Source of the DNA: Oculina patagonica
Lineage: Eukaryota
NCBI RefSeq assembly: GCF_052425735.1
Contig: NC_135767.1
Coordinates: forward strand, 8,060,001-8,124,000
Length of the DNA: 64,000 bases
Direction of reading: 5' to 3'
Shown: positions 31,580-55,224 of the stretch, piece by piece
Position numbering within the stretch: position 1 is the first letter of the stretch
Layout: each line of letters opens with the position of its first letter
Program-made: the position numbers and the translations under genes
Notes under the pieces: model-generated
The model's database searches: none
Told to the model about the DNA's origin: nothing
The model's input: only the letters and a program-made list of their open reading frames with translations

Positions 31580-33900
31580 TAATGAACTTATATTGCGCAA
31601 GTATCAATCAAGGATTTTCACTTGCGCATTACAATATATATAAAAAAATATATCACTAACTGGCCCTAAAATTAATAAAAATACTAAAATGCATGATAAG
31701 TGTAAAATTACAATCAATAAAAAATAAAAATTAGCTTAAAAACGCCTTGAGTCTTAAGATACTTTTTAAAACTATTTACAGATAAAATATTTCTAATAAA
31801 AATGGGAAGATCATTCCATAATTTCGGAGCAGCCATATAAAAAGATCTGTCACCCAGGGTAATAAAAGACTTGATGGTAGGAAAGTTTAAAAGTATTCCA
31901 TCATTTGACCTTAAGTTATATCTACCACCAGTATCCCTAACAGATATAAGTTCGGTAATGTAAGGCGGAGCGAGACCATGGATAGCCTTAAACGTTAACA
32001 ATGAAATCTTAAAGTCAATACGAAACTTGACAGGCAACCAATGGAGTGATCTAAGCAGAGGGGTAATGTGACAATATTTGCTTTGTTCTAAAACAAGGCG
32101 AGCGGCTGAGTTCTGAACTCTTTGCAATTTCTGTAGCTGACATGCCGGTAGTCCATATAATAAGCTGTTACAATAGTCAATTCGACTAGAGATAAAGGCA
32201 TGCATCAATGTTTCCGTACATTCCTTACTAAGATATTTCCTAATCCTTCTAATATTATACAAATAATAAAACGCAACAGAGCTTGTTTTCGTTATGTGGT
32301 CGCCCATCGATAGATTGGAATCCAACCACACACCCAGATTTCTAACGGGGGACTGCGGAGCAATGGGAAAGGTGCCAATCACTATGTTATCAATTCTGAC
32401 TTTACCGAGTTGCTGTTTGGTGCCGATCAGAAGAAGTTCTGTCTTAGCATCGTTCATGAGCAACTTGTCTTGAGACATCCACTGCCTAATGTCTTGAGTG
32501 CAGTGTTCGATAGCAGCAATTGCATCAGCCTGGCCAGATTGCTCCTTTGGACTGAAAGAGATGTATAACTGTGAGTCGTCGGCATAACAGTGTACAGTTG
32601 GCAGGTGCTTTCTGACGACATCAAACAATGCGCTTGCATAGACTGTAAACAGAAGCGGGCCAAGACAAGAGCCTTGGGGGACTCCATAGCGCAGATCAAA
32701 CTTCTCAGACACAGATCCACGAACAGAGACTCGCTGGGAACGCCCAGACAAATAAGATCGAAACCAGTCGAGGGCAGTGCCATTCAAACCAAGCTTTAAC
32801 GACAACCTTTTTAGTAGAATGTTATGATCGACGGTGTCGAAAGCCGCACTGAGATCAAGCAACACAAGAATAGTAACGTGCTGCTTATTCATATTCAACA
32901 GAATATCGTTCATTACTTTCAGAAGTGCTGTTTCAGTACTGTGGTTTCTTCTGTAAGCAGACTGTGCGTCCGGATATAAGTTGTTGCTAACCATGTGTCC
33001 GTGAATCTGGTTGAACGCGGCTCTCTCAATGAGTTTAGATACGAATGACAAGTTACTCACAGGACGGAAGTTCTTAAATAAGAAGTCCAAACCAGGTTTC
33101 TTTAACAATGGAAAAACAAGAGCCTCTTTCCAAAGTTCAGGGAATTGCCCAGACTGCAGTGAAGTGTTAATAATGTTTGTGAGAACTGGGAGAAGAACCT
33201 CGCATTTGCTTACCAGTGTGGATGGCATAGGGTCGAGGGGGCAGGACTTTTTTGCAGAGCTTTGGATTAGCAGTTTAACATCATTACAAGACAGCATCTT
33301 AAATGCAGGAACCGATGGTGCCGGCTCAGCAACAGCAGTGGATGGAGTGTCATTTTCTACATGTGAAACAGCCGGATCCGTGTCAAGCCGACTACGGATC
33401 GTTTCAATCTTCTGCACAAAGTATTTCCCCAAGTCGTTAGAAAAAACTGCACTGTTTAAATGGGGCGGGAGGCCATCATCCACAGTGCGATTAAACAAGC
33501 GCTGACTAGCTCGGAATAGTTTCCTTTGATCACCACTGTTCTCTTCTATGAAGTTAGTATAATACTCCCTACGAGCCTTATTTATAAGACGAGTAGTAGC
33601 ATTGCGTTTTGCTTTAAAAACAGCAAAATCAGAGTCCAATCGCGACATCCTCCACCTCTTTTCAGCCTTTCGTCGTTGGCGCTTCGCCTCCCTAATCTCC
33701 TCACTAAACCACGGTACACGAGGTCGCTGGACGACCGTTCTTGTTAGTAACGGCGCATGCTTGTCCAAAGCAGCTTTCAGGGTGTCATTATAAGATGTTA
33801 CGAGCTCCTGCAAAGCATCTGGCGGTTCCTGGCATAGCTTCGAAGTTGCCAAGGACTCGTTCAGGGAATCTACGTTAACAGATTTTACTTTCCGGTAGAC
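31523..33900 (-). mobile_element. 5'-truncated L2/CR1-clade LINE
   Basis: Open ORF2 remnant, 3' UTR stem-loop (TGCGCAAGT...ACTTGCGCA) and (TTA)n tail at 31523-31578; no endonuclease domain or ORF1. Confidence 0.92.
31714..33852 (-). CDS. LINE reverse transcriptase (N-terminally truncated ORF2, 712 codons open)
   Basis: NFRPVSNL, QSAYRRNHSTETAL, LLDLSAAFDTVDH, GVPQGSCLGP, YADD, SRIDYCNSLL, LHWLPV, WNDLP; the ORF-track start is TTG. Confidence 0.9.
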   Translation of the reverse strand: MATSKLCQEPPDALQELVTSYNDTLKAALDKHAPLLTRTVVQRPRVPWFSEEIREAKRQRRKAEKRWRMSRLDSDFAVFKAKRNATTRLINKARREYYTNFIEENSGDQRKLFRASQRLFNRTVDDGLPPHLNSAVFSNDLGKYFVQKIETIRSRLDTDPAVSHVENDTPSTAVAEPAPSVPAFKMLSCNDVKLLIQSSAKKSCPLDPMPSTLVSKCEVLLPVLTNIINTSLQSGQFPELWKEALVFPLLKKPGLDFLFKNFRPVSNLSFVSKLIERAAFNQIHGHMVSNNLYPDAQSAYRRNHSTETALLKVMNDILLNMNKQHVTILVLLDLSAAFDTVDHNILLKRLSLKLGLNGTALDWFRSYLSGRSQRVSVRGSVSEKFDLRYGVPQGSCLGPLLFTVYASALFDVVRKHLPTVHCYADDSQLYISFSPKEQSGQADAIAAIEHCTQDIRQWMSQDKLLMNDAKTELLLIGTKQQLGKVRIDNIVIGTFPIAPQSPVRNLGVWLDSNLSMGDHITKTSSVAFYYLYNIRRIRKYLSKECTETLMHAFISSRIDYCNSLLYGLPACQLQKLQRVQNSAARLVLEQSKYCHITPLLRSLHWLPVKFRIDFKISLLTFKAIHGLAPPYITELISVRDTGGRYNLRSNDGILLNFPTIKSFITLGDRSFYMAAPKLWNDLPIFIRNILSVNSFKKYLKTQGVFKLIFIFY

Positions 33901-39138: not shown

Positions 39139-39259
39139 CTGTGAACAATCTAGTTATTGGCTTCATATTTTTATCCAATAGCCTATCCTATATTTTTATC
39201 CTAAAGATAACATGAGGGCAAGATTAGTGGCGCGAGTATTGGTTTAACGTGTCTTCGAA

Positions 39260-39362
39260 AACGTGTACACGCGAGCACGAAATCGAGTAAAAAAGAAAAA
39301 AAAGGAAACACGCCAGGACTAGACAGTAGACACGCCCCCATGTACCGCCTCCACTATATAAC
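39260..39362 (+). promoter_or_regulatory. Putative serpin promoter (GC box plus TATA)
   Basis: CACGCCCCC...CCGCCTCC-ACTATATAA about 50 bp before the ATG; near-identical block at 42276-42380. Confidence 0.6.
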
Positions 39363-39407
39363 TAAAGGAAGACTTGGAAGAGCTAGCAATCTGCAGAAAC
39401 CATCAAA

Positions 39408-40573
39408 ATGGCTGCTACAGAAAGCGGGGTTGTGGGGAAAGCGACGAACAAATTCGCTCTGGATCTGCATCAATGCCTCGTAGATGGCAATGAATTTGCC
39501 AATGACAATCTCTTCTATTCCCCTGCCAGTCTCCTCATTGCTCTTGCGATGACATCTTATGGAGCCAGGGGAAATACTGCGGCAGAAATATTGAAAGTTC
39601 TTCACGTTGCTTTGGTTTCTTCACCCGACCTCAACAAGAGCATGAAGAAATTCATTGACACGTTAAATGGAGCAAGCGACGAGAACAACAAGTTGCTTAC
39701 AGCAAACAGGCTGTTTGTTGAAAAGAGCGTTGAAATCCTGAAAGCCTTTAAAGAAGGAACTCGGAGTTTTACGATGCAGAACTCGCTCTTGTTGACTACA
39801 TCACAAATGCGGAGAAAGCCAGAGAAGAGATCAACCGTTGGGTGGAAGAGAAAACAAATGACAAGATTAAAGATCTTATTCCTTCTGGAATGCTGAGCTC
39901 AGACACAAGGCTGACACTAGTAAATGCTATTTACTTGAAAGGTTTGTGGCTGGAGCAATTCAATAAGGAAAATACACATCCTGGGTCATTTTTTGGGTCC
40001 AAGAATAAAAAGATCAAGGTGCAAATGATGTACCAAGAAGCTGATTTCAAGTATTCCAAATCAGAGAAGCTGGCTTGCCAAATACTTGAGATGCCATACA
40101 TTGGCAAAAAGATGTCCATGGTAATCTATCTTCCTAACGAAACCCAGGGCCTTGTCAAATTGGAAGAAAGGATGACTTATGACAACCTTCAAGAGTCTCT
40201 TTCCTTGCTTGATGCCTCAATGGTTGAGGTGCGAGTATTCTTGCCAAAATTTAAGCTGACTCAGCAGTTTGACCTCAACAATATTTTGTCCAAGATGGGA
40301 GCCAAAGAGATGTTTATTCCTGGTAAGGCTGACCTCTCTGGTATCTCGACAGAGCCATTGTATGTCTCCAAGGTGGTTCACAAGGCTTTTGTTGAGGTGA
40401 ATGAAGAAGGCACTGAGGCGGCAGCAGCTACTTTTATTGAGAGTGTTTTTTTCTGCCTTCCCTCAAAGCCAACATTCAAAGCTGACCATCCTTTTCTGTT
40501 TCTCATTCGGCACAACAGCTCTGGTGCCATATTGTTCCTGGGCCGTCTCATGAAGCCAAGCCATGAAGAATGA
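39408..40573 (+). pseudogene. Intronless serpin 1 with 1-bp deletion (pseudogene or assembly error)
   Basis: ORFs 39408-39896 and 39842-40573 join if one C is restored at ~39763 (actcggag vs actcgcgag in all paralogues). [28 protein letters not shown] replaces the conserved NAIYFKG. Confidence 0.85.
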
Positions 40574-41409
40574 AAGATTCAGAATTTTTTTTAGAAATTA
40601 AAAAATTAGTAGTACATTTGAAGTCTTTGAACCTTTTTGTATGGCTCTGTAAAGACTGCTATTACCCATTGGAGAGTTCACTTGCTGTTAGACCACTTTG
40701 TGACAATTATTTGTAGTGAACCTATATAATATGGTATTTTACAGAATTGAAGGACACAAATCATATCTACATGTCAGTTTAACATAAACTGTTCTGCCAG
40801 AATGTGTAGGAAATTATTAAATGAATGGCATTAAGTTACCGTATAGTTATTCGAAGGCGCAGCGAAAAAATCTGTTTTCTGAGGAAGCACCAAGGGGGCC
40901 AAGCCGAGAGCCCAACAAAATCAGACTGCATACCGGAACACAGAAAACAAGAGAAATGAAAACCTACTGTTTGGACACAGAAAAGAATAAGAAACTTAGT
41001 AAACGCAAAGTATATCGTGGAAAAAACGAGAAGAACACCTGAAGTCAGCATTTGTTGAAATAGAAAAGAAAACCAAGCATACTCATTTGAAACAATGATA
41101 AATCAATTGTATGTTTGCTGTTAGGGTCAAAACGTTTTCAAAATGTATTGCAGTTATAGCTCTGACCCTTATAAATATTGTGAAATGTTTTTCACAGAAT
41201 CACAGTTTATAATAGTGACGTACATTTAGAGGCTGTAATGTATGGACATTTTGTTCTAAAGTAATTTTTAAACCAGAAACCAGTGAACTTGTCAGCGAGA
41301 AAGTAATCATTTTTTAACTGAGAGATAAAATGTTGATTTCTGTAAAGATTTGAAAAGTCCTGAACCATTGTCAATAGTGAATCAGGTGTGCTATATTTAG
41401 AAATATAAC

Positions 41410-41680
41410 TACCATGGATTGAAAAAAATTATGCTGTGGCTAAAGCAACTTATGGAGCTTTTTGTGGAGGCTGCTTTTGACTTTTATAAATGCCCTGCAA
41501 ATGGCAATTAATTTGCTATTATGACAATACTTTCTATTCTCCTGCAAATCTTCTTACTGCCCTTTTGATGCATCTTATAAAGCCAAGGATAAAGCTGCTG
41601 CAGAAATATCAATCAAAATCAATCAATAATTAATTTTATTTAATGAATAATGAAAGTTCTTTATGTGGCTTCAGTTTCGT
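41410..41680 (+). pseudogene. Highly degraded 5' serpin relic
   Basis: ttataaatgccctgcaaatggcaat...gacaatactttctattctcctgcaaatcttcttactgccctt...gctgcagaaata...aaagttctttatgtggcttcagtttcg aligns to HKCL.DGN..DNLFYSPASLLIAL...AAEI.KVLHVASVS, with stops and indels. Confidence 0.75.
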
Positions 41681-42275
41681 ACGTTAGTAAAAGTTAGATT
41701 GACATTTCTGGAATTGTGCTACATTTAAACGTTTAGCTAAGGCATTTACCTAGCAATTCACGGGACTTCAATTCATAAACCTTGCGTTACACAACCTCGT
41801 CCCCTGGGGACGAGGTTTTGCATATGCATGTGCGTTAGGGACAGACATAGTGGAGGGGGGGAAGAATGAAAATTGTTTGAGGGCCTGGAAAGAAAATTGT
41901 TTGCAAAAACGATATGAAACAAAAAAAGAGACAAAAAATGTTTGCAGAGGGAAACTAAAAAAAAAGTTGCAGAGGAAAATTTTCATCCCCCCCCTCCAAG
42001 AAAATAATGGTCCGTCCCTTACTCAAGAGCGTTACAAACGTAACAATCACGCAGAACATGTACCTGGCCAGCGGTTGTCCATAGGAAAATCCAAAATGGC
42101 TGCTCTTGGACTGTTGTTTGTTCTACAAATACTACGTGACTAAATTGAGGTGGGAATCCAAGAAAGAAAAGCGAAGTAACACTAAGAAAATGTCTTCAGC
42201 CGTCAATGATTCCAATAGAGCAAAGCCAATATTACTGGCGCGAGTATAAATGCCCGTTCTTCCGTGAGCACGAGA

Positions 42276-42380
42276 ACGTGTACACGAGCACGAAATCGAG
42301 TAAAAAAGAAAAAAAAGTATGTAAACACGCCAGGACTAGACAGTAAGACACGCCCCCATGTACCGCCTCCACTATATAAA
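42276..42380 (+). promoter_or_regulatory. Putative serpin promoter (GC box plus TATA)
   Basis: Duplicate of 39260-39362; TATATAAA at 42373. Confidence 0.6.
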
Positions 42381-42421
42381 GGGAAACTTGAATGAGCTAC
42401 CTAGCTGTAAAAACCATCAAA

Positions 42422-43588
42422 ATGGCTGCTTCTGACGGTGGGGTTGTGGCAAAAGCGACGAACAAATTCGCTCTTGATCTTCATAAATGCCTCGCAGATG
42501 GTAATGAATTTACCAATGACAACCTGTTCTATTCTCCTGCAAGTCTCCTCATTGCTCTTGCGATGACATCTTATGGAGCCAGGGGAAATACTGCGGCAGA
42601 ATTAATCAAAGTTCTTCATGTTGCTTCGGTTTCTTCTCCTGACCTCAACAAGAGCATGAAGAACTTTATTGACACCTTAAATGGAGCAAGCGACGAGAAC
42701 AACAAGCTGCTTACAGCAAACAGGTTGTTTGTTGAAAAGAGCTTTGAAATCCTGAAAGCCTATAAAGAAGGAACTCGCGAGTTTTACGATGCAGAACTCG
42801 CTCAGGTCGACTACATTACAAATGTAGAGAAAGCAAGAGAAGAGATCAACCGCTGGGTGAAAGAGAAAACAAATGACAAGATCAAAAATGTTATTCCTCC
42901 TGGAATGCTGAGCTCAGACACAAGGCTTACTCTAGTAAATGCTATTTACTTCAAAGGCTTGTGGCTGGAGCAATTTAAGAAGGAAAGAACGCGTCCTGGG
43001 TCATTCTTTGTGTCCCAAAATGAAGAGATCAAGGTTCAAATGATGTACCAAGAAGCTGATTTCAAGTATTCTGAGTCGGAGAAGCTGGCTTGCCAAATAC
43101 TTGAGATGCCCTACACTGGCAAAAAGATGTCGATGGTAATCTATCTTCCAAATGAAACCCACGGCCTTGCCAAATTGGAAGAAAAGATGACTTATGACAA
43201 CTTTCATGAGTCTCTTTCCTTGGTTGATGCCTCAATGGACGAGGTGGAAGTATTCTTGCCAAAATTTAAGCTGACTCAGCAGTTTGACCTCAACGACGTC
43301 TTGTCCAAGATGGGAGCTAAAGAGATTTTTAATCCTGGTAAGGCTGACCTCTCTGGTATCTCGACAGAGCCATTGTTTGTCTCCCAGGTGGTTCACAAGG
43401 CTTTTGTCGAGGTGAATGAAGAAGGCACTGAGGCGGCAGCAGCTACTGGTGTTGGTGTGGACGCAGCATGCCTTCGCCCAAAGCCCACATTCAAAGCAGA
43501 CCATCCTTTTCTGTTTCTCATTCGGCACAACAGCTCTGGTGCCATATTGTTCCTGGGCCGCCTTATGAAGCCAAGTCATGAAGAATGA
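42422..43588 (+). CDS. Intronless intracellular-type serpin 2 (388 aa; clade-B/leukocyte elastase inhibitor-like)
   Basis: NLFYSPASL, INRWV..KTNDKI, LVNAIYFKGLW, LPKFKL, inhibitory hinge [19 protein letters not shown]. Start chosen by homology to paralogues; the upstream ATG at 42392 lies just after the TATA. Confidence 0.95.
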   Translation: MAASDGGVVAKATNKFALDLHKCLADGNEFTNDNLFYSPASLLIALAMTSYGARGNTAAELIKVLHVASVSSPDLNKSMKNFIDTLNGASDENNKLLTANRLFVEKSFEILKAYKEGTREFYDAELAQVDYITNVEKAREEINRWVKEKTNDKIKNVIPPGMLSSDTRLTLVNAIYFKGLWLEQFKKERTRPGSFFVSQNEEIKVQMMYQEADFKYSESEKLACQILEMPYTGKKMSMVIYLPNETHGLAKLEEKMTYDNFHESLSLVDASMDEVEVFLPKFKLTQQFDLNDVLSKMGAKEIFNPGKADLSGISTEPLFVSQVVHKAFVEVNEEGTEAAAATGVGVDAACLRPKPTFKADHPFLFLIRHNSSGAILFLGRLMKPSHEE

Positions 43589-44451
43589 ATTAATGGATTT
43601 AGAATTTTTTTTATTGAAAATTGTAAAAGTAGAAGTACATTTTGAACCTTTCTATATGGCTCTGTTAAATTACCTAAACTGATATAGAGAGTTCACTTGC
43701 TTTTAGACCACTTTGTGACACTTTATTATATGTAGTCAACCTCTATAAATGGCATTTTGCAGAATTGAAGGAAATCTGAAGTTATTAAATGAATGACTTT
43801 GTATAATTAAGTTGCTGGAAAATCAATTTTTTTGTTTGCTGATAGGGTCTAAAAGTTTCATTAAGTATTGCAAAAGTTACTGGGCCTCATAAATATCTTG
43901 AAATATATTTCACGATTTATAACAGTGGACATACATTTAGAGGTTGTATTGTATAGACATTTTGTTCCAAGGTAATTTTTAGACGAGAAACCAGTGAAAC
44001 TGGCAGCACTTGAGAAAGTAATCCTTTTTTTTTTCATCTTTTTTTAAGTGAGAGGTGCAATGTTGATCTCTGTAAGGACTCGAAGAGTGCTGGATCATTG
44101 TCAATATGGCAAGGTTTTCCCAAGGAAATTATCTCTATATGATGAAATGATTATTTTATGCTGATTATAGGAACTATAAAACATTTGTGGAGGTGTATGT
44201 TATTGTTTAGCAGTCTCAGACATAAAGTTCACCAGAGATATTGTTAAATAGTTTTCTAAAATATGATCTCATCTGTCAGAATGTGACCTTACAAAAAATG
44301 TGATTTGTTTGAATAAGAAATAAATTTTATGGAGAATAAAATTATTTTAATAATAATAAATTGTAATGAATAGTATTACTACCAGCTGAAGAATATTTCT
44401 GCCATGAAATTGAAAATATTTTTGGTTTTTTTTTTTTTTTTTTTTTTTGGG

Positions 44452-44557
44452 GGTCATAGTGACTCTATTCTACCAGGTGTATAAATGGGTACCAGTGACA
44501 TAATGCTGGGGGGGGGGTTACCCTGCAATGGACTAGCTTTCCATTCAGGGGGAGTAC
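44452..44557 (+). mobile_element. CORE-type SINE internal fragment
   Basis: CCAGGTGTATAAATGGGTACC...CCCTGCAATGGACTAGC...CAGGGGGAGTA matches 34103-34183. Confidence 0.75.
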
Positions 44558-46345
44558 AACCCCAAGAGAAATATGTAAAATATGTAAACTAAAATCCTTA
44601 ATTTCCCTGGGTGTCTTCCAGACACATCCGGGCGCTTATTAACTTTTCCTACCTACAGGGGGGTGCTTATTCGAGGTGGGCGCTCATTCGAGGTTGGGCG
44701 CTTACCTAAAAAACTTTTTTTTTTAAAACCAATCGAATAAATACGGTATCATTGTCTTATAATTACTACTATGAATAATTTAAAAAAATACCAATAAAAT
44801 TAAGAATGATGAACCTACCAAAAATTTTATTTAACACATAATTATGAAACAGATTTTCATGGTAGTAATTGTGATCAATTCATTACAATATATTAAATAT
44901 ATCTCTTATATTAATTAAATAATCTTCTATCCTCAAAAGTTTTCTAATTAGCAAATTGTATTATTTTGAAAAATTTCCAGGCCTCATTTAGATCTACAGT
45001 CAACTCCCACTACAATGGATACCTTTACCACAACTTGGGGTCTGTAGTTGAGGAGGTCCATAATTAAAATTAAACGGGAGTTGGGGTTTTTGTGTTTGGG
45101 GGGGGGTTGTTTTTTTTTTTTTTTAATAGGAGTTATTTTTAGCACTTCTCTTATTCACCCGGACTTCAACTTCTGTCTTATTTGCTTTTTCGAAGCAAGG
45201 TGGGAGTTCAGTAGATCATTAAATAAGTTATTATATCAAGCCCATATCTATGTTTAGGAATGTTATATGATTTCTTGGTCACAGCAATATTCTGACATTT
45301 TTTTTTTAGATAAGATAAGATAAGATTTTATTTACCTCTCCAAAAATGGTTTTCAGGGCAAATTACAATAAAATGTTAAAAATGTTTCATGGTTATTAAC
45401 TCTTATATAGCACTTTGTTCATACCAATAACGAACTTGCCAACTGCACAAACGACTAACATAATTATTTTGTACTTTTCAGTTAACAAAACATTATTTTT
45501 TTTACAGAGGACTGCACTAGTTTCTTGGTTAAAAATTGCTTTGCAACAAAATGTCCCCAGCCCATTAACGTATCCTAAAATGATTCAAGAGTTTTAGTCA
45601 TAAAAACTATAATTAAAAATTTTTCATAGTATTTTTGAGGGCCAATTCCTAATGCAATACATTAATGAAAATGTTTGACCCTATCAAAATATGATTTACA
45701 TGCTATTTTAACCTACAAATAGTCAAACTTTGTTAACAATTTATTTTAATAATAATTTACTAATCCACTTAAATCATCTGCAGCAATATTGTAGAGCACA
45801 ACTGAACATATTCATATAGAAGTCTGCGTAATATAAATGGTTATTATAATATTACAATTATTATTATCATCATCAACAGTTCATGTTAGATCTAATACAC
45901 ATTTCTACATTTCTGTAAATAGAGGATAATACATAGTTGCGCTGAGATTGAAGTTCATCTTGGAGTGTTCATATTGATATTGAACGCGAGAAAAGAAATT
46001 TCATATCTCCAAGCAACCATGTATTATTTTATTTTATAAACCTACTAATAACAAGGTTTTTGATGATTTTCCAAAGATTTCCGACCATTTTCAGAAGAAG
46101 ATTTCAGAAGATTGCTGAAGAATGCCAAGGAAGATCTGAAGATGTTTCAACTACATCTCGACAAACTTTGGCTCATTTAGTATTGAAACATGCTTAACTT
46201 GTCAGCAAACGTGTCGAAATTGATATCTACCGGAAATCACATGTGAAAGATATCATATCTTTTACAGTGTAAAGATATGATGATTTTTCTCATTGAGAGA
46301 AATCCTGGTGGTGGTAATTCAGCTCTGAGTTTATGAAAATAAAAT

Positions 46346-47515
46346 TCAGCCTTCATGAGCTGGTCTCATGAGACGGCCCAGGAACAATATGGCACCAGAG
46401 TCGTTGTGGCGAATAAGAAACAGAAAAGGATGGTCAGCTTTGAATACCGGCTTCGGCAATGGCATAGAAAATGTATTGACACCAATAGCAGTAGCTGCTG
46501 CTGCCTCAGTGCCTTCTTCATTCACCTCGACAAAGGCCTTGTGAACCACCTTGGAGACAAACAATGGCTCTGTTGAGATACCAGAGAGGTCAGCCTTACC
46601 AGGAATAAACATCTCTTTGGCTCCCATCTTGGACAAGATGTTGTTGAGATCAAACTGCTGAGTCAGCTTAAATTTTGGCAAGAACACTTCCACCTCATCC
46701 ATTGAGGCATCAAGCAAGGAAAGAGACTCTTGAAGGTTGTCATAGGTCAACTTTTCTTCCAATTTGGCAAGGCCGTGGGTTTCGTTGGGAAGATAGATTA
46801 CCATGGACAACTTTCGGCCAGTGTATGGCATTTCAAGTATTTTGCAAGCCAGCTTCTCTGACTCAAAATACTTGAAATCAGCTTCTTGGTGCATCATTTG
46901 GACCTTGATCTCTTCATTCTCAGACACAAAGAATGACTCAGGATGTGTTCCCTCCTGTTTGAATTGCTCAAGCCACAAACCTTTGAAGTAAATAGCATTC
47001 ACTAGAGTCAGCCTTGTGTCTGAGCTCAGCATTCCAGAAGGAATAAGATCTTTGATCTTGTCATTTGTTTTCTCTTCCACCCAGCGGTTGATCTCTTCTC
47101 TGGATTTCTCCACATTTGTGATGTAGTCAACCAGAGCGAGTTCTGCATCGTAAAACTCGCGAGTTCCTTCTTTAAAGACTTCCAGGATTTCAAAGCTCTT
47201 TTCAACAAACAGCCTGTTTGCTGTAAGCAGCTTGATGTTCTCGTCGCTTGCTCCATTTAAGGTGTCAATGAACTTCTTCATGCTCTTGTTGAGGTCAGGT
47301 GACGAAACTGAAGCAACATGAAGAACTTTCAATATTTCTGCCGCAGTATTTCCCCTGGATCCATAAGATGTCATCGCAAGAGCAATGAGGAGACTTGCAG
47401 GAGAATAGAACAGGTTGCCATTGGCAAATTTATCGTTATTTGCAAGACATTTATGAAGATCAAGAGCGAATTTGTTCGTAGCTTCCGCCACGAACCCACT
47501 TTGTAAAGCAGCCAT
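46346..47515 (-). CDS. Intronless serpin 3 (389 aa)
   Basis: Intact ORF with all serpin motifs; [29 protein letters not shown]. Confidence 0.95.
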   Translation of the reverse strand: MAALQSGFVAEATNKFALDLHKCLANNDKFANGNLFYSPASLLIALAMTSYGSRGNTAAEILKVLHVASVSSPDLNKSMKKFIDTLNGASDENIKLLTANRLFVEKSFEILEVFKEGTREFYDAELALVDYITNVEKSREEINRWVEEKTNDKIKDLIPSGMLSSDTRLTLVNAIYFKGLWLEQFKQEGTHPESFFVSENEEIKVQMMHQEADFKYFESEKLACKILEMPYTGRKLSMVIYLPNETHGLAKLEEKLTYDNLQESLSLLDASMDEVEVFLPKFKLTQQFDLNNILSKMGAKEMFIPGKADLSGISTEPLFVSKVVHKAFVEVNEEGTEAAAATAIGVNTFSMPLPKPVFKADHPFLFLIRHNDSGAILFLGRLMRPAHEG

Positions 47516-48112
47516 GTTTGCAGTCGTTGTAGCAGTAGTTACCAGGTTTTCTCTGAGGTTCTCTCAAGTTGAGGCGCGGCAGGTGGTGCGTCACGCGTGT
47601 CACGCACGATGTGTCGCGTAGCTTTTTGTCTACATGTAGGGCCCGGTGTCCATCCCTTTGGGGGGTCAAGTTTTTGACCCCTTGTATTAACTTTTAACGC
47701 AATTCAAGGCTGAGCGAATTTTCTTGGTGTCTACCATTTTCCTTTTAGTTAATTTCGGACTTTTTGCGAGATCCGTACTGAAGGCTAACAATTTATCTAA
47801 CGCAGGATTGGAGACGACACTGTTCGGGTTTAGCGTGACTGTAACGTAAGGGTTGATATGTCAACTTTCGTGACAGCGCGTGACCATCTCCCTTGTGTTA
47901 AATGCATAGTTCGTGCAAAATAAAGGTGATGTGAAATTTGCTGAGAATGTCTTTTCCGGGAGAATTTTAATACAAAAGAAGAGAAAGAGAAATATGTAGC
48001 ACGGATTTAAATTACAGGACAGGACAATCGGCCAAACCCCCTCGAGACACGCCCCCCATTCTCCGCCTCAAAGGAAAAGAACCTGGTAACAATCGTTGCA
48101 CAAACTACAAAC

Positions 48113-49271
48113 ATGGCTGCTTTTGAAAAGCAGTTAGTAGGAGAAGCAGCGAACAAATTCGCTCTTGATCTTCATAAATGCCTCGCAGCTGGCGACAACT
48201 TGTTCTACTCTCCTACAAGTCTCCTCATTGCTCTTGCGATGACATCTTATGGAGCCAGGGGAAATACTGCGGCAGAAATATTGAAAGTTCTTCATGTTGA
48301 TTCGGTTTCGTCACCTGACCTCAACAAGAGCATGAAGAAGTTTATTGACACCTTAAATGGAGCAAGCGATCAAAAGAACAAGCTGCTTACAGCAAACAAG
48401 CTGTTTGTTGAAAAGAGCTTTGAAATCCTGGAAGCCTTTAAAGAAGGAACTCGCGAGTTTTACGCTGCAGAACTCGCTCAGGTCGACTACATTAGAAATG
48501 TTGAGAAAGCCAGAGAAGAGATCAACCGCTGGGTGGAAAAGAAAACAAATGACAAGATCAAAGATCTTATTCCTTCTGGAATGCTAAGCTCAGACACAAG
48601 GCTGACTCTAGTGAATGCTATTTACTTTAAAGGCTTGTGGCTGGAGCAATTCAACCAGAAAGAAACATTTTTGGGGTCATTCTTTGTATCCCAAAATGAA
48701 GAGATCAAGGTTCAAATGATGTATCAAAAAGCTCATTTCAAGTATTCTGAGTCAGAGGAACTGGCTTGCCAAATACTTGAAATGCCATACATTGGCCGGA
48801 AGATATCCATGGTAATCTTTCTCCCAAATGAAACTAACGGCCTTGCTAAAATGGAAGAAAAGATGACTTATGACAACCTTGAAGATTCTCTCTCGTTGCT
48901 TGATGAGGCAATCTTGACGGATGAGACGGAAGTGTTCTTGCCAAAATTTAAGCTGACTCAGCAATTTGAACTCAACAACATTTTGTCCAATATGGGAGCC
49001 AAAGAGATGTTTATTTCTTGGTAAGGCAGACCTCTCTGGTATCTCAGCAGAGCCATTGTTTGTCTCCAAGGTGGTTCACAAGGCCTTTGTCGAGGTGAAT
49101 GAAGAAGGTACTGAGGCGGCAGCAGCTACTGGTGTGGTTGCGTTCTTGGCGTGCTTACGCCCAAAGCCAACATTCAAAGCTGACCACCCTTTTCTTTTTC
49201 TTATTCGGCACAACAGCTCTGGTGCAATATTGTTCCTGGGCCGTCTCACGAAGCCAAGTCATGAAGAATGA
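48113..49271 (+). pseudogene. Intronless serpin 4 with +1 frameshift (pseudogene or assembly error)
   Basis: atttcttggtaag vs attcctggtaag at ~49013-49019. ORFs 48113-49024 and 48966-49271 together make a full serpin. [28 protein letters not shown]. Confidence 0.85.
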
Positions 49272-49970
49272 AAGATTTGAATTTTTTATAGATGAAATTA
49301 TAGAAGTACATTTGAACCTTTCCATATGCATAGGCCGCGGAGCAGGGAGGCAGGGGGGCTGTAGCCCCCCCCCCCCAAAAAAAAAAAAAACAACAAAAAT
49401 TTGGGGGAGCTCAGCCCCCCTCCCCCATGTTTTGGTGCCGAAAATATCGCGAGCGCAGCGTAAAATTGGTTTGTCAAGATATTCCATCTCGTGAGTGAGT
49501 TAAAACATTTTCAAAACTTTCTTAGAAGTCTTCAGGAAACTTCCTTTCCCCTCAGAAAAGTTCCATTATATGATCGGAAAGGTTCATATGGCCTTCAAAC
49601 AATGAAAACCTGCCGAGTATTTTTGGTCAGTCTCTGCCCTTCACGTTCCAAAGTGCTCTGCCGCCTCTGATACAGTTTATTTATTACATGATAGAGAGTT
49701 CACTTGCCCCTTGACACTGACAACCTTCAGTTGTGACAATTATATGTAGTGAACCTCTATAATATGGCGTTTTGAAAAATTGAAGGAAATCATATCGACA
49801 TGTATAACATGAACTGTTCCTCTGGAATTTGTATGAAATTATTAAATGAATGGTAGCTGTTAATAATGCTATTGACCCCCACAACTTTAAGACGTATAAA
49901 CTCAGAGCTTTTTCAGTCATTGACCCTGACTGCGGAACAATCTGCCCTTGGCAATTAGATCTATTGACAA

Positions 49971-50150
49971 TGTGTGGTTCAAGACAATATCCATACCCAC
50001 CCCATGGAAGGTCAAAGAAATCCTGAGGGTGGGAGGTATCAAAAGCCAAATTTGTAAAGGAAAGTAGGGGCAACTGGACCAGAGGGGTGGGGGGATCAAG
50101 CCAAAAAACCTTCCATGGGAGGGGTATGGATATTTTTTGAAGCTACACAA
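49971..50150. mobile_element. MITE
   Basis: TGTGTGGTTCAAGACAATATCCATACCC / GGGTATGGATATTTTTTGAAGCTACACA. Confidence 0.7.
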
Positions 50151-50897
50151 TACAAATATTTTTAAATCTAAGTTAAAGACCTTCCATTTTAAGCAAGCTA
50201 TAAACGATTTATCTTAGCATTGTGTAAAGCAATGATATATGTAGCAATGTACATGTACAATGTATTATTATTATTATTGTTATTTTTTTGGATAAGCGCT
50301 ATATAAATATTGTATTTGTATTGTATATTTAGCTGTGTAGAGTGATGTGTGGTGTTTTTTTGGGTATGATAGGAACATTTTAGAGGTGTATGTTATTATT
50401 AAGAAGCCTTGGACATAAAGTTTGTCAGAGATGTGAAATAGTTTTCTAAAATAAGATATGTAAGAAATGTGACCTTACAAAATCATATGATTTGTCTTAA
50501 TAGGAAATTAATTTGTTAAGAATAAAATTATTCTTATAATATAGATATACATTTAATAGATAGATGGATATACAATTTAATATAATTGTAATGAATAAGC
50601 AATATTACTGCTAAGAATTTTAAAATAATTTTAGAATTAAAAAAAGAGCTTATCAATCTCACTGAAATTTGCTTTTATCATCAGTAAATTTTTTAATGGC
50701 CCTGTTAGGTAATTCCCAGAGGAGAACTTAACGAAAAAGCAGAAAGAAACATGACTATTTTTTTACTTATTTATTCCTGGGTATGAGGGCTGGGTGAAGG
50801 GGGCTACTAAAAAACGAAAAGAGAAAGAGAAAAAAGATAGGGGACAAGCCCGGGGGTGGGCAGTATTCCAAAAAAAGCTGGGGGGTGTACAGCACCC

Positions 50898-51337
50898 AGG
50901 GGGGGTACTCCCATAAATTGGCTATTCAGGTATGTGCCGCCCAACAGGGTATGCTTTTTTGCCTCCCTGACTCTGGAACAGAGTCGCTTTATCTTCATGC
51001 CACAGACGGAAGTTAGGTACACTGTAAGGCTTTTAGCGACTTTTTAATTTTTACTTTTGACAAGGGCCTCTATTGATAACAGTTTTTTATTGTAAAAGCT
51101 GATAGAGTCACCCTATTTAAATAAAGGCTTTCTCACTTTATGATATTCTCCAGTGTTTTTTATTATTTATATCTATATATTTTTCCGTCGTGCATATTTT
51201 CTGAAACAGGGTGCCTAATATTTCCAATGTTTGTCTGGGACAGGGTCGCAAATTCACCTTATTTTCTCTGGAACAGGTCCAGGGTCAGGCAGAGACTCAG
51301 CGGTACATTGCCGTACAAAATGTTTGGGAGTACCCCC
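50898..51337. mobile_element. MITE
   Basis: TIRs GGGGGGTACTCCCA / TGGGAGTACCCCCC; same terminal motif as the 31248 element. Confidence 0.7.
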
Positions 51338-52244
51338 CGGGGGTGGGGGCACAGCACACCTACTAAAATCCTCACCCTGTTTCAGACCTGACCCCAAAAA
51401 TTGATATCCTTTTACATACCAGCCGAAAAACTGCTTTGGCTTCAAAATACGTACTCTATGACTAAAGGCCTAGACTTGAAACAAGTCGACTCTTATGAGT
51501 GATGTAGTCGCGATAACGAGGAACAAGGTCGCCGGCTAACGAGGATAGCACACAAAATGGACTTTGAAAAAGTCTACTAAGGGCTCAGCAATCCCACATT
51601 GTATTTGAACGAAGTCTAAACTTACTTAATGCAACTTTCGGGGCTGAGAAAATTTTCTTGTTGTCCTCTCCGATCAAGCTAAGAACGAATATATTTCCGA
51701 CGAACAGGTGCTCTGACTATGACAATGTAAAATGCAATGTACGTGTTTTTTTTTCTTCTTCTTGCCTGAATGTAATGTGAGGGTTGATTATGTATAAGTT
51801 GCGTGACTAAGGAGGCTCCCAAAGTGGTTTTAGGGAACAACGGAACATGGCCATGGCTGGAAACACAGGAACAAAAGCTGTGCTTCTGTGTTTTAGGGAA
51901 CAGTGTTCATAAAAATGGACAAAATGCTTTTAGGGAACAAGGTAACACAATGAATTTTTTGAGGGAACAAGGAAACATGGCCGGTCCTACCCTGTGAGGC
52001 TCTTACTTAGTGTAGTGAGTGACCTCCTTTGTTTTCGCGTAAAATTCTAATCATTGGAACTCCCTGAACGTAACATGTCTCAAGATTGTCTTTTGTTGGA
52101 TTATTTTGACCAAAAAAATAGAAAGAGTAAGGAACACACCTTGAAGCACTTACAATAAATTATATATGAACAAAGAACTGGCTTGAAATCCAGGATAGAA
52201 CTGAAAAAAAAAAAACAAAAACAAAAATGAAACGACCAGCCCTT

Positions 52245-53345
52245 AAACCTTTGCTTGAGTTTGCAACAAAGAAAAGCCACTTCATATTCGACGGCCAGTA
52301 CTATGATCAAGTTGATGGCCTAGCCATGGGTTCACCATTGGGTCCTGTTTTTAGCTAACATTTTCATGCGTCATTTTGAGGAACAATGGGTATATAACGC
52401 AGTGAACTGTCCATCCATTTGGTTTAGATACGTTGATGACACTTTCTCCCTGTTTGACAGTAAAGACAAAGCTTCAAGATTTCTACATTACCTAAGCAAC
52501 AGGCATCCCTGTGGAACTCGAAGAAAACCAAGAGATCCCATTCTTAGATGTCCTCATCAAACGCCATGAAAATTTAATACCTTCTCTACAACAGTACACC
52601 GCAAAAAGAAATTTACAGGTCTTTACACCAAGTGGGATTCTTTCACGCCAAGGAAGTATAAAATCAATTTAATCCGCACCCTCACCTATCGCTGTTTTCG
52701 CATTTGTTAGACATCCTCTTCTTTACAGGCTGCTATCTCTGATCTCAGGAAGACATTGCTTCAAAATGGTTACCCGAATGGTATAATTTCCTACAACGTT
52801 AATGATGTCTTAAATAAACATATAGGAACAGTCCTTCTGAAACTGTTACCACGGTTCCCAAGAAATACGTAATCGTTGTGTTACCTTATCTACAACCATG
52901 GACATTTTTGGTTGAAACGCTCTTAAAAACATGAATTTATCACCGTAATAACTGTTAAATATGTGTCAGTACCCCCGTTCCCCCTTTCAATGTTGGCAAG
53001 TGGTAAGATGCTCTCACGTGTCAGATGAATGTTTTTATCAAAATTGCATAGGGGTGAGGAGGGGCAAAATATGTGTGAATAATTATTTTCCAATACTTGT
53101 GACCATGGTTGTAGGTTTCCAAACCGAAGATTTTAAACGCCGTCTTAAATCTTGTGTTAATAAATTTTATGGCTTCGTGAATCTTAGGTTGAGTTTTCAG
53201 AACACTTGCCGGATTAAGTCCTTTTTTCCTTACAAAGATCGTTTCAATCGCTCGCAAAAATCGAAGGTTGTCTACAAAGCCAGTTGCTGGGACTGTGACG
53301 CTTTCTATATTGGCAAAACAAAACGACGACTGCATGACAGAAAGG
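52245..53345 (+). mobile_element. Degenerate Penelope-like retroelement (RT plus GIY-YIG)
   Basis: FDGQYYDQVDGLAMGSPLGP, WFRYVDDTF, IPFLDVLI, TGLYTKWDSFTP and VVYKASCWDCDAFYIGKTKRRLHDR, across frameshifts and stops. Confidence 0.9.
52891..53113. mobile_element. TA-flanked (Tc1/mariner-type) MITE inside the Penelope element
   Basis: TA-CAACCATGGACA...TGACCATGGTTG-TA; removing it restores LPYLGFQ. Confidence 0.8.
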
Positions 53346-53757
53346 ACTCCAGAAACGCTTTGAGGTATGAAACCTTTCTTCAGCCACAATTTGAAGACAG
53401 AACATTCCACTTTTGTTCTTTTTAAATCGAAATTAGAGGCGAATTTGAAAAACTTGCTGCGAAACGACCGCATGAAAATTTTTCATTTGAATGAAATTGA
53501 GGTAGGCTTAACCATACTTGAATGCGTAAATATTTCAACTAGATTTGCTGACTTTGTGAGAATCTTTTGGTAGTCGGAAAAAGGATTATAAATACGATAT
53601 ATGAATGAAATGGTATCTTGGTTTATTTTCAAAAAGCCGCCAAAGAAGAGATTAAAATAAACTTTCACTTTACCAATGTTGCGTGCGTTTGTAAATGCCG
53701 TAAGCGGCCGTGAGTCTTGTAAGTTCTGTGCTCTTTTTAATGCTATATTCTAAACCC

Positions 53758-53921
53758 ACTAGAATATGGTTTTCCTATGTCCTATAAGAAAATAATGCAC
53801 TTATGAGGTCTAGAAAAGCAGCTGAATGCCCTCGCCTAACGGCTCGGGCATCCACTAGCAGCTTTTCTAGACCTCAAGCGTGCATTATTTTCTTATAGAA
53901 CATGGAAAACCATCTTCTAGT
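53758..53921. mobile_element. Palindromic MITE ~150 bp upstream of serpin 5
   Basis: ACTAGAATATGGTTTTCC...CTATAAGAAAATAATGCAC is mirrored by GTGCATTATTTTCTTATAG...GGAAAACCATCTTCTAGT. Confidence 0.75.
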
Positions 53922-54072
53922 AGGTATATATAAAATATAGTATAAGAGTCCACCCCCACCCCCCCCCCCCCCCCTCAAACACCCCCGCCGCAGCCCCACA
54001 ATTGGCCACGCCCCCTTTCAGACACGCCCCCAAGAAAAGAACCTGGTAACGACTGGCAACGAATGCACAAAG

Positions 54073-55224
54073 ATGGCTGCTACAGAAAGACAGCTTGTGG
54101 GAGAAGCTGCGAACAAATTCGCTCTTGATCTTCATAAATGCCTCGCAGCTGGCGACAACCTTTTCTATTCTCCTACAAGTCTCCTCATTGCTCTTGCGAT
54201 GACATCTTATGGAGCCAGGGGAAATACTGCGGCAGAAATATTGAAAGTTCTTCATGTTGATTCGGTTTCGTCACCTGACCTCAACAAGAGCATGAAGAAA
54301 TTCATTGACACCTTAAATGGAGCAAGCGATGAGAACAACAAGCTGCTAACAGCAAACAGGCTGTTTGTTGAAAAGAGCTTTGAAATCCTGGAAACCTTTA
54401 AAGAAGAAACTCGCGAGTTTTACGATGCAGAACTCGCTCTGGTTGACTACATCACAAATGCTGAGAAAGCCAGAGAAGAGATCAACCGCTGGGTGGAAGA
54501 GAAAACAAATGACAAGATCAAAGATCTTATTCCTTCTGGAATGCTGAGCTCAGACACAAGACTGACTCTAGTGAATGCTATTTACTTCAAAGGCTTGTGG
54601 CTGGAGCAATTCAACCAGAAAGAAACATTTTTGGGGTCATTCTTTGTGTCCCAAAATGAAGAGATCAAGGTTCAAATGATGTTCCAGAAAGCTGATTTCA
54701 AGTATTCTGAGTCGGAGAAGCTGGGTTGCCAAATACTTGAAATGCCTTACATTGACCGGAAGATGTCCATGGTAATCTATCTTCCTAATGAAACCCACGG
54801 CCTTGCCAAATTGGAAGAAAAGTTGACCTACGACAACCTTAAAGAGTCTCTTTCTTTGCTTATGTATTCCTCAGCGGATGAGGTGGAAGTGTTCTTGCCA
54901 AAATTTAAGCTGACTCAGCAGTTTGACCTGAACGACATCTTGGCTAAGATGGGAGCCAAAGAGATGTTTATTCCTGGTAAGGCTGACCTCTCTGGTATAG
55001 CAGATGCGCCATTGTTTGTATCTAAAGTGGTTCACAAGGCCTTTGTTGAGGTGAATGAAGAAGGTACCGAGGCTGCTGCAGCGACTGCTATTGGAATAGC
55101 TTTGATGTGCATGCCATTGCCGAAGCCAGTGTTCAAGGCTGACCATCCTTTTCTGTTTCTTATTCGGCACAATGAGTCTGGTGCCATATTGTTCCTGGGC
55201 CGTCTCATGAAGCCAACAAAGTGA
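54073..55224 (+). CDS. Intronless serpin 5 (383 aa)
   Basis: Intact ORF; [29 protein letters not shown]; upstream ATTGG and two CACGCCCCC boxes. Confidence 0.95.
   Translation: MAATERQLVGEAANKFALDLHKCLAAGDNLFYSPTSLLIALAMTSYGARGNTAAEILKVLHVDSVSSPDLNKSMKKFIDTLNGASDENNKLLTANRLFVEKSFEILETFKEETREFYDAELALVDYITNAEKAREEINRWVEEKTNDKIKDLIPSGMLSSDTRLTLVNAIYFKGLWLEQFNQKETFLGSFFVSQNEEIKVQMMFQKADFKYSESEKLGCQILEMPYIDRKMSMVIYLPNETHGLAKLEEKLTYDNLKESLSLLMYSSADEVEVFLPKFKLTQQFDLNDILAKMGAKEMFIPGKADLSGIADAPLFVSKVVHKAFVEVNEEGTEAAAATAIGIALMCMPLPKPVFKADHPFLFLIRHNESGAILFLGRLMKPTK

Follow-up and report, generated by a model that had tools for sequence, protein, structure and literature searches.

How does a coral come to carry, side by side, five serpin genes that are nearly alike over most of their length and differ in the very loop that meets the protease? 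The question is raised by a window of 64,000 nucleotides of the Oculina patagonica genome (assembly GCF_052425735.1, contig NC_135767.1, positions 8,060,001 to 8,124,000; all positions below are counted within this window), where five serpin copies, here S1-S5, lie within 16 kb (39.4-55.2 kb). An earlier account, made from the letters alone and called here the sequence-only reading, had seen in them a 'bait library': a constant scaffold with a hypervariable reactive-centre loop (RCL) under diversifying selection. We consider it probable that this stony-coral locus is instead a cluster of tandem genes evolving by birth and death, which encode inhibitory serpins of SERPINB1-like type from single exons and without a signal peptide. 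As such it is a new lineage for a pattern of serpin evolution long known from rodents.

In the mechanism proposed here each intact copy would be a suicide-substrate inhibitor, as the mechanism of the family implies. A protease would cut the exposed loop at or beside a hydrophobic P1 residue (F, A or M), the Ala-rich hinge would insert into sheet A and the protease would be trapped, the choice of target being set by the loop sequence. Copies are made and removed by duplication and loss, with the RCL-bearing 3' module escaping homogenisation. The outcome is two ancient specificities (S3, NTF/S; S5, ALM/C) and a younger short-stalk subgroup, made up of S1, S2, S4 and copies on two other chromosomes.

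Conserved hinge, variable loop and selection

The sequence-only reading spoke of five intronless paralogues. There are indeed five single-exon copies, none of them interrupted by an intron, but only three have intact frames. S2, S3 and S5 are uninterrupted open reading frames (ORFs) of 383-389 codons and cover positions 2-370 of the 370 in the Pfam serpin model PF00079 (E 7e-128 to 2e-126). S1 and S4 are frameshifted, and their ORF pieces match the model at positions 2-111 and 133-370 (S1) and 2-289 and 288-370 (S4). Pairwise identity among the five is 82-87% for amino acids and 87-90% for nucleotides, with identical runs of up to 131 nt or 80 amino acids; a repeat finder places the similarity between S2 and S3 from 3 nt before the ATG to about 10 nt into the variable loop. 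The 10-residue hinge is identical in all five copies and each P7-P1' segment is different (Table 1), exactly as had been claimed under the canonical 17-residue count.

The contrast between body and loop was assessed quantitatively. Invariant columns among the five amount to 271 of the 380 outside the loop, compared with none of the 12 inside it. In a scan with sliding 12-codon windows (n = 364) over seven paralogues of this genome, the loop window ranks first for non-synonymous divergence (pN = 0.467; other windows, mean 0.071 and maximum 0.302). It also ranks first for synonymous divergence, measured there on only about eight synonymous sites per pair (pS = 0.503; others, mean 0.222 and maximum 0.479). 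Since it is the maximum of 364 windows, the divergence of the loop is far beyond chance.

All five copies carry the inhibitory hinge consensus (P17 Glu, P15 Gly, P14 Thr or Ser, small residues at P12-P9). In an alignment of 40 homologues E333, G335, T336 and E337 are invariant and A338-A341 are at least 90% conserved. By direct count the spacing from P15 Gly to the Phe of strand 1C is 23 residues in S1, S2 and S4, as in SERPINB1, and 24 in S3 and S5; we take this spacing to match that of alpha-1-antitrypsin and so to be consistent with full insertion of the loop. Hinge and loop length thus favour inhibitory-type serpins, as the sequence-only reading had it. A structure prediction for S2 based on the 40-sequence alignment was poor (mean pLDDT 63.7, pTM 0.64), the loop being disordered and other segments too.

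The canonical P1 residue is Met, Phe or Leu in 76 of 101 homologues, and a hydrophobic P1 in most members suggests chymotrypsin- or elastase-like targets, again in line with what had been proposed. Two proteins of other corals (P0059 and P0064) have Asp-Cys at canonical P1-P1' (...AVLD/CARM... and ...VAVD/CARK...), an arrangement similar to that of serpins that bait caspases or granzyme B, of which the viral CrmA is one. S2 has Asp at canonical P3; to see in it a caspase- or granzyme-type bait would be speculation.

Selection was measured as the ratio of non-synonymous to synonymous rates (ω). In the scaffold, Nei-Gojobori estimates give dN of 0.05-0.10, dS of 0.2-0.49 and ω of 0.16-0.37. Maximum-likelihood codon models (GY+F1X4) fitted to 13 sequences yield ω of 0.28 for the scaffold, 0.19 for the 3' flank and 0.84 for the loop, the last being above 0.28 (p = 0.0013) and not different from 1 (p = 0.61); the loop tree is about 4.8 times as long as that of the scaffold. 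The RCL thus evolves above the scaffold background, which is the outcome expected in the sequence-only reading. The further claim of diversifying selection fared less well, in that ω is never significantly greater than 1.

The loop estimates separate by type. In the S3 and S5 loops and their counterparts from other corals ω is 0.18, below 1 (p = 0.0018). Between the S5 loop and that of its orthologue P0004 there are one non-synonymous and three synonymous differences, and between the S3 loop and three orthologues 2.5 non-synonymous and 4.5-5.5 synonymous changes. The same loops recur among the coral proteins retrieved, 20 being of S3 type and 15 of S5 type. The S3 and S5 loops are therefore old, fixed specificities under purifying selection and not an arms-race library. 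The short-stalk or 'PTF' subgroup, represented in these models by S1, S2, S4, the contig-2 and contig-13 copies and P0005 of another coral, has loops one codon shorter. Its loop ω of 1.80 does not significantly exceed 1 (p = 0.22) but lies far above 0.2 (p < 1e-5) and compares with 0.27 in its flank, and the loop tree is about 8 times as long as that of the flank; for P7-P1' only, ω is 1.4, not significantly above 1 (p = 0.58). This split by type, together with the recurrence of two loops among corals, points to two old specificities plus a labile subgroup, which is younger, has loops evolving approximately neutrally or faster and turns its members over quickly.

It is in this subgroup that the arms race of the original proposal, with loops diversified by selection against the proteases of pathogens or symbionts, would have to be sought. 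Apart from the ω values and tree length just given, it can call on some pairs in which pN is well above pS (0.64 and 0.20, respectively, in the loops of S1 and the chromosome-2 copies), and on a chromosome-2 copy whose loop differs from its counterpart in another coral by five non-synonymous changes and one synonymous. However, neither short-stalk estimate significantly exceeds 1, and taking all copies together lowers the value to 0.84. Purifying selection acts on the S3 and S5 loops, the loop is also where synonymous divergence is greatest, and of the three labile copies within the window two carry a frameshift. We consider diversifying selection an unlikely explanation of the loop differences.

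Relaxed constraint, with the short-stalk copies as redundant duplicates drifting to loss, their loops neutral and S1 and S4 dead, has somewhat more in its favour, though we still think it improbable. Statistically the loop ω is not separable from 1, S1 and S4 carry frameshifts, a broken serpin copy is present at the syntenic locus of another coral, and a large protein collection holds no intact or transcript-derived S1 or S4 protein. Drift alone sits poorly, however, with a flank ω of 0.27 in the same genes, by which these as a whole were constrained until recently. Likewise, S2 and the contig-2 and contig-13 copies are intact; the loops of the two chromosome-2 copies do not differ at all, although their scaffolds have diverged to a dS of 0.077; and the hinge and the P' stalk are kept in all copies. 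At the present sample size drift and positive selection in the short-stalk loops are indistinguishable.

Mosaic genes and frameshifts

The near-identity of the scaffolds has itself a history, which was followed by sliding-window nearest-neighbour analysis, by trees of separate segments (codons 1-225, and 276 to the end without the loop) and by approximately unbiased (AU) tests. Over roughly their first 675 nt S4 and S5 share 89-98% of positions, and from there on they are among the least similar pairs. At its 3' end S4 is nearest to S2 and the contig-2 copies, while the 3' end of S5 is 93% identical to its orthologue P0004 from the other coral, compared with at most 84% to any paralogue. The 5' tree accordingly joins S4 with S5 (support 100/99) and the other coral's two genes with each other (90/86); in the 3' tree S5 groups with P0004 (99/100) and S4 falls within the short-stalk group. 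Each swapped grouping fails the AU test (p = 2.6e-7, 1.2e-4, 6.6e-5 and 9.9e-4). In short, the 5' two-thirds of the genes group by species or neighbour and the RCL-bearing 3' end by orthologue. Given this incongruence, the 'constant scaffold' is due in part to gene conversion or recombination and does not stand as such: the synonymous peak in the loop and the mosaic genes are signs of homogenisation around it.

A bolder construction would make the 3' third with the RCL an exchangeable cassette, which recombination between tandem copies, with a breakpoint at about codons 225-275, sets with its old or new loop on locally homogenised scaffolds. In this construction the short-stalk set, here S2 with its relatives on two further chromosomes, would have been recruited recently and positively selected against pathogen or symbiont proteases, and the loop Cys would act as an oxidant switch in bleaching-type stress. 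Taken as a whole this appears distinctly unlikely to us, and we retain the birth-and-death cluster, with its partly homogenised scaffolds, as the preferred reading.

The two frameshifts bear on how many of the copies are alive. In nucleotide alignments S1 lacks one base between 39763 and 39764 (CTCG-GAG compared with CTCGCGAG in the others) and S4 has one additional T at 49014-49016. No intact allele of S1 or S4 was present in a collection of 5.8 billion proteins, which returned only this assembly's own gene models; the sole 100% match to S1 is its 357-residue model. In contigs from four public runs no correcting indel is listed at the S4 site, although these are short Logan contigs for which spanning of the exact base is unproven; the S1 site lies outside the 6-kb stretch compared. 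With no database allele and no clear contig across the S4 site, S1 and S4 are either recent pseudogenes or the result of indel errors in the assembly. A private excess of non-synonymous changes in their scaffolds was not significant (non-synonymous to synonymous, 11:19 in S1 and 21:12 in S4 compared with 87:79; p = 0.16 and 0.26, respectively), and the breaks, if real, are recent.

That both are assembly errors, and all five genes intact and functional, is possible but in our judgement the less probable case. The additional T of S4 stands next to a short T run, a context typical of long-read errors, and neither scaffold has significantly relaxed. The change in S1, on the other hand, is a lost C in CTCGCGAG, with no homopolymer; the contigs of the four other runs list no indel at the S4 site, with the reservation on exact coverage already made; and the database holds no intact allele of either gene.

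Cellular location, relatives and the loop cysteine

No N-terminal hydrophobic segment was found in the first 36 residues of the five copies (Kyte-Doolittle, 12 residues). Their maximum 12-residue hydropathy is 0.7-1.0, compared to 2.2-2.6 in the secreted paralogues of contigs 8 and 2, in which the signal peptide lies within the single exon and which thus provide an internal control from the same genome. The lack of a signal peptide remarked on in the sequence-only reading is thereby borne out. The serpin domain starts at residue 12 and ends 2-4 residues before the C-terminus, with no terminal extensions.

Upstream, S1 and S2 share some 250 nt of conserved sequence with the contig-2 and contig-13 copies. 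A CACGCCCCC box about 60-70 nt before the ATG is common to all eight close copies, and genes of the S1/S2 type have a TATA-like box, TATATAAAGG, separated from the ATG by about 40 nt that include in-frame stops. The box and stops so close to the ATG make an upstream signal-peptide exon unlikely, at least for the S1/S2 type. The S2 frame is open from 42392, offering an alternative start 10 codons earlier; this ATG is only some 10 nt downstream of the conserved TATA-like box and is probably upstream of the transcription start. S3, S4 and S5, where in-frame stops also lie upstream, have a proximal motif of their own, AACCTGGTAAC (regions 47516-47600, 48040-48112 and 54000-54072). A bacterial-type promoter and terminator scan of the S3-S4 spacer was set aside, the host being eukaryotic.

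Some clade-B serpins are secreted by way of uncleaved internal signals, ovalbumin and PAI-2 being cases of export without a classical signal peptide. By this precedent the coral proteins might act outside the cell, in mucus, in the gastric cavity or at nematocyst discharge, and the classically secreted serpins of the coral genome do imply a need for extracellular inhibition. Yet with paralogues dedicated to secretion there is no need for another way out of the cell, the first 36 residues contain no hydrophobic stretch, and a free loop cysteine suits a reducing compartment. We regard such export as very improbable.

The best solved relative is human SERPINB1 (4ga7), matched over the full length (E = 1.6e-90), and the affinity suggested for the coral family comes from this best match. 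As in SERPINB1 (LEI/MNEI), there is no signal peptide, the hinge is the same and a hydrophobic residue followed by Cys occupies the scissile region. Unlike in SERPINB1, the coral Cys is P1' rather than P1, and the S3 and S5 loops are one residue longer. HMMER aligns the S5 loop to that of SERPINB1 with a one-residue gap, which puts the coral Cys opposite Cys344; the strict hinge count places it at P1'. The coral genes are intronless, whereas 7-8 exons are recorded for vertebrate clade B genes (PMC1308813). On account of this single-exon structure the family is classed as SERPINB1-like and not as a member of clade B.

The P1' cysteine of four copies had been put forward as a possible source of redox sensitivity. 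Of the 101 homologues, 59 have Ser and 31 have Cys at canonical P1' (90 of 101 together). In SERPINB1, Phe343 serves chymotrypsin-like and Cys344 elastase-like proteases; on oxidation, inhibition of elastase and PR3 is lost and that of cathepsin G kept, and the C344A variant is resistant to oxidation (PMC11327461). With Ser or Cys so widespread and this redox precedent already documented, the loop Cys is an ancestral trait of the family and no new device. By analogy with SERPINB1, through it the elastase-type reaction, at least, is probably oxidant-sensitive. Likely roles, judging from P1 and the missing signal peptide, would be in cytosolic protection against chymotrypsin- or elastase-like serine proteases, whether these come from intracellular microbes or from the granules, lysosomes or phagosomes of the coral itself.

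Several points weigh against the cluster being what we propose. The targets and the inhibitory activity of the coral members are read from their sequences. The frameshifts of S1 and S4 may be assembly errors, and the scaffolds of these two copies show no significant relaxation. The raised synonymous divergence of the loop stands on the few sites mentioned above. Clade-B-type serpins can leave the cell without a classical signal peptide. As to expression, the putative RNA runs X23 and X13 yield contigs on the coding sequences of both S3 and S4, and no depth over 47521-48123, a spacer that the DNA runs do cover; these contigs are short and 95-99% identical, so that they may derive from paralogues. 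They are weak evidence that the serpin family is transcribed and have no bearing on individual copies.

The wider family and the layout of the cluster

A six-frame search of the whole genome found three close paralogues elsewhere, at 87% identity, on contigs 2 and 13. The genome has 20 or more serpin loci altogether, grouped in several clusters; all are single-exon, and their loops are of many different kinds. A second, larger single-exon cluster is on contig 8 (10.02-10.17 Mb; L009-L023), with one further gene on contig 2 (38.44 Mb; L013), and these are 41-55% identical to the window serpins. At the contig-8 and contig-2 loci a head-to-head arrangement recurs in which one gene lacks a signal peptide and its partner encodes a classical one within the exon; loops differ between copies and several copies are broken.

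In another coral (ENA ERZ25067872) the neighbours of the syntenic locus are, as here, TMEM121/CECR6-like genes, and the locus contains one short-stalk serpin, one internally deleted serpin and the S5 orthologue. The deleted copy (L025:13660-14560) has lost about 110 central codons and kept a distinct loop, GVMATFASFCPTPMF. A metagenome scan returned three full-length close coral sequences and one partial, the remainder being distant and mostly prokaryote-looking. Among the latter, sequences from sediment, sludge and hot-spring metagenomes (L038-L105), probably prokaryotic, are 40-47% identical to S3, about as close as human SERPINB1.

The sequence-only reading held that the repertoire had evolved independently, which is right for the expansion and wrong for the family, shared as it is by many stony corals. 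Sea-anemone serpin genes are intron-poor, and only three were known to Kumar and Ragg (PMC2556349). The coral serpins resemble those of Nematostella vectensis in being intron-poor cnidarian genes and differ in number, with at least 20 loci compared with three known there. It is thus probable that introns have long been absent from these genes and that the number of copies seen here results from expansion. Recent retroposition was considered as the source of the intronless state and judged unlikely, all anthozoan relatives seen being single-exon and promoters being shared between copies.

Close parallels exist with the rodent Serpina1, Serpina3 and clade B clusters, which likewise consist of tandem paralogues with a conserved body and divergence concentrated in the RCL. 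For the rodent inhibitors, which Hill and Hastie were the first to describe, gene conversion and selection have been invoked (Hill & Hastie 1987 and Ohta 1994, as cited in PMC3966226), Ohta's conclusion agreeing with ours. In recent work on tandem rodent SERPINA genes, episodic selection again has its hotspot in the RCL (PMC12646145). The rodent clusters encode secreted plasma serpins with introns, whereas the coral genes are intracellular-type, single-exon and cnidarian. Unlike in the rodents, ω above 1 is not established in the coral, where two loop types are conserved between species. A constant scaffold combined with many alternative RCL modules is also known from Manduca serpin-1, with its alternatively spliced RCL exons (Jiang et al. 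1994, as summarised in PMC3966226). There, however, diversity arises from mutually exclusive exons of one gene, whereas in the coral it is spread over distinct intronless genes, between which recombination reshuffles the 5' and 3' modules. In the full-text library searched, no description of serpin clusters in stony corals, or of the loops of such serpins, was found.

The classic serpin mode of tandem duplication, scaffold homogenisation and loop divergence is thus met with in a non-bilaterian too, and on single-exon intracellular genes. For coral immunology the cluster offers candidate cytoprotective inhibitors, with two conserved specificities across stony corals and a few that are lineage-specific. 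Oculina patagonica is a long-used model of Vibrio-associated bleaching. The unique loop sequences may be used as paralogue-specific expression tags in infection, symbiosis and bleaching.

The layout of the cluster is given in Table 1. Attention is drawn to the public gene models, which are distorted for three of the five copies: that of S1 has 357 residues, that of S3 340 despite an intact 389-codon ORF, and that of S4 338, with a foreign C-terminus and without the RCL.

Table 1. Serpin copies and associated features in the window. In the loops the slash separates canonical P1 from P1' (17-residue count), the seven residues before it being P7-P1.
Feature	Position	Strand	Remarks
S1 upstream region	39150-39407	+	S2 equivalent at about 42165-42421
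S1	39408-40573	+	1-bp deletion; ORFs 39408-39896 and 39842-40573; short-stalk 'PTF' subgroup
S1 hinge	40403-40432	+	
S1 variable loop	40433-40465	+	FIESVFF/CLPS
S2	42422-43588	+	intact, 388 aa; PF00079 E = 7e-128; PTF subgroup
S2 hinge	43418-43447	+	
S2 variable loop	43448-43480	+	GVGVDAA/CLRP
S3	46346-47515	-	intact, 389 aa; loop type kept in many other corals
S3 hinge	46519-46490	-	
S3 variable loop	46489-46454	-	AIGVNTF/SMPLP
S3-S4 spacer	47516-48112	.	short, head-to-head; presumed bidirectional promoter region
S4	48113-49271	+	1-bp insertion; ORFs 48113-49024 and 48966-49271; mosaic
S4 hinge	49101-49130	+	
S4 variable loop	49131-49163	+	GVVAFLA/CLRP
S5	54073-55224	+	intact, 383 aa; loop and 3' end orthologous to P0004 (other coral)
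S5 hinge	55057-55086	+	
S5 variable loop	55087-55122	+	AIGIALM/CMPLP

The window as a whole contains no N and has a G+C content of about 38%. The TMEM121/CECR6-like genes lie at 20-29 kb, and between them and the serpin cluster is a reverse-transcriptase-like ORF of 712 codons (31714-33852, minus strand). The spacer between S2 and S3 holds very high-copy repeats at 44305-44706, 45310-45510 and 45913-46113 (summed contig depth 10^3 to 5x10^4), which are presumably transposable elements.

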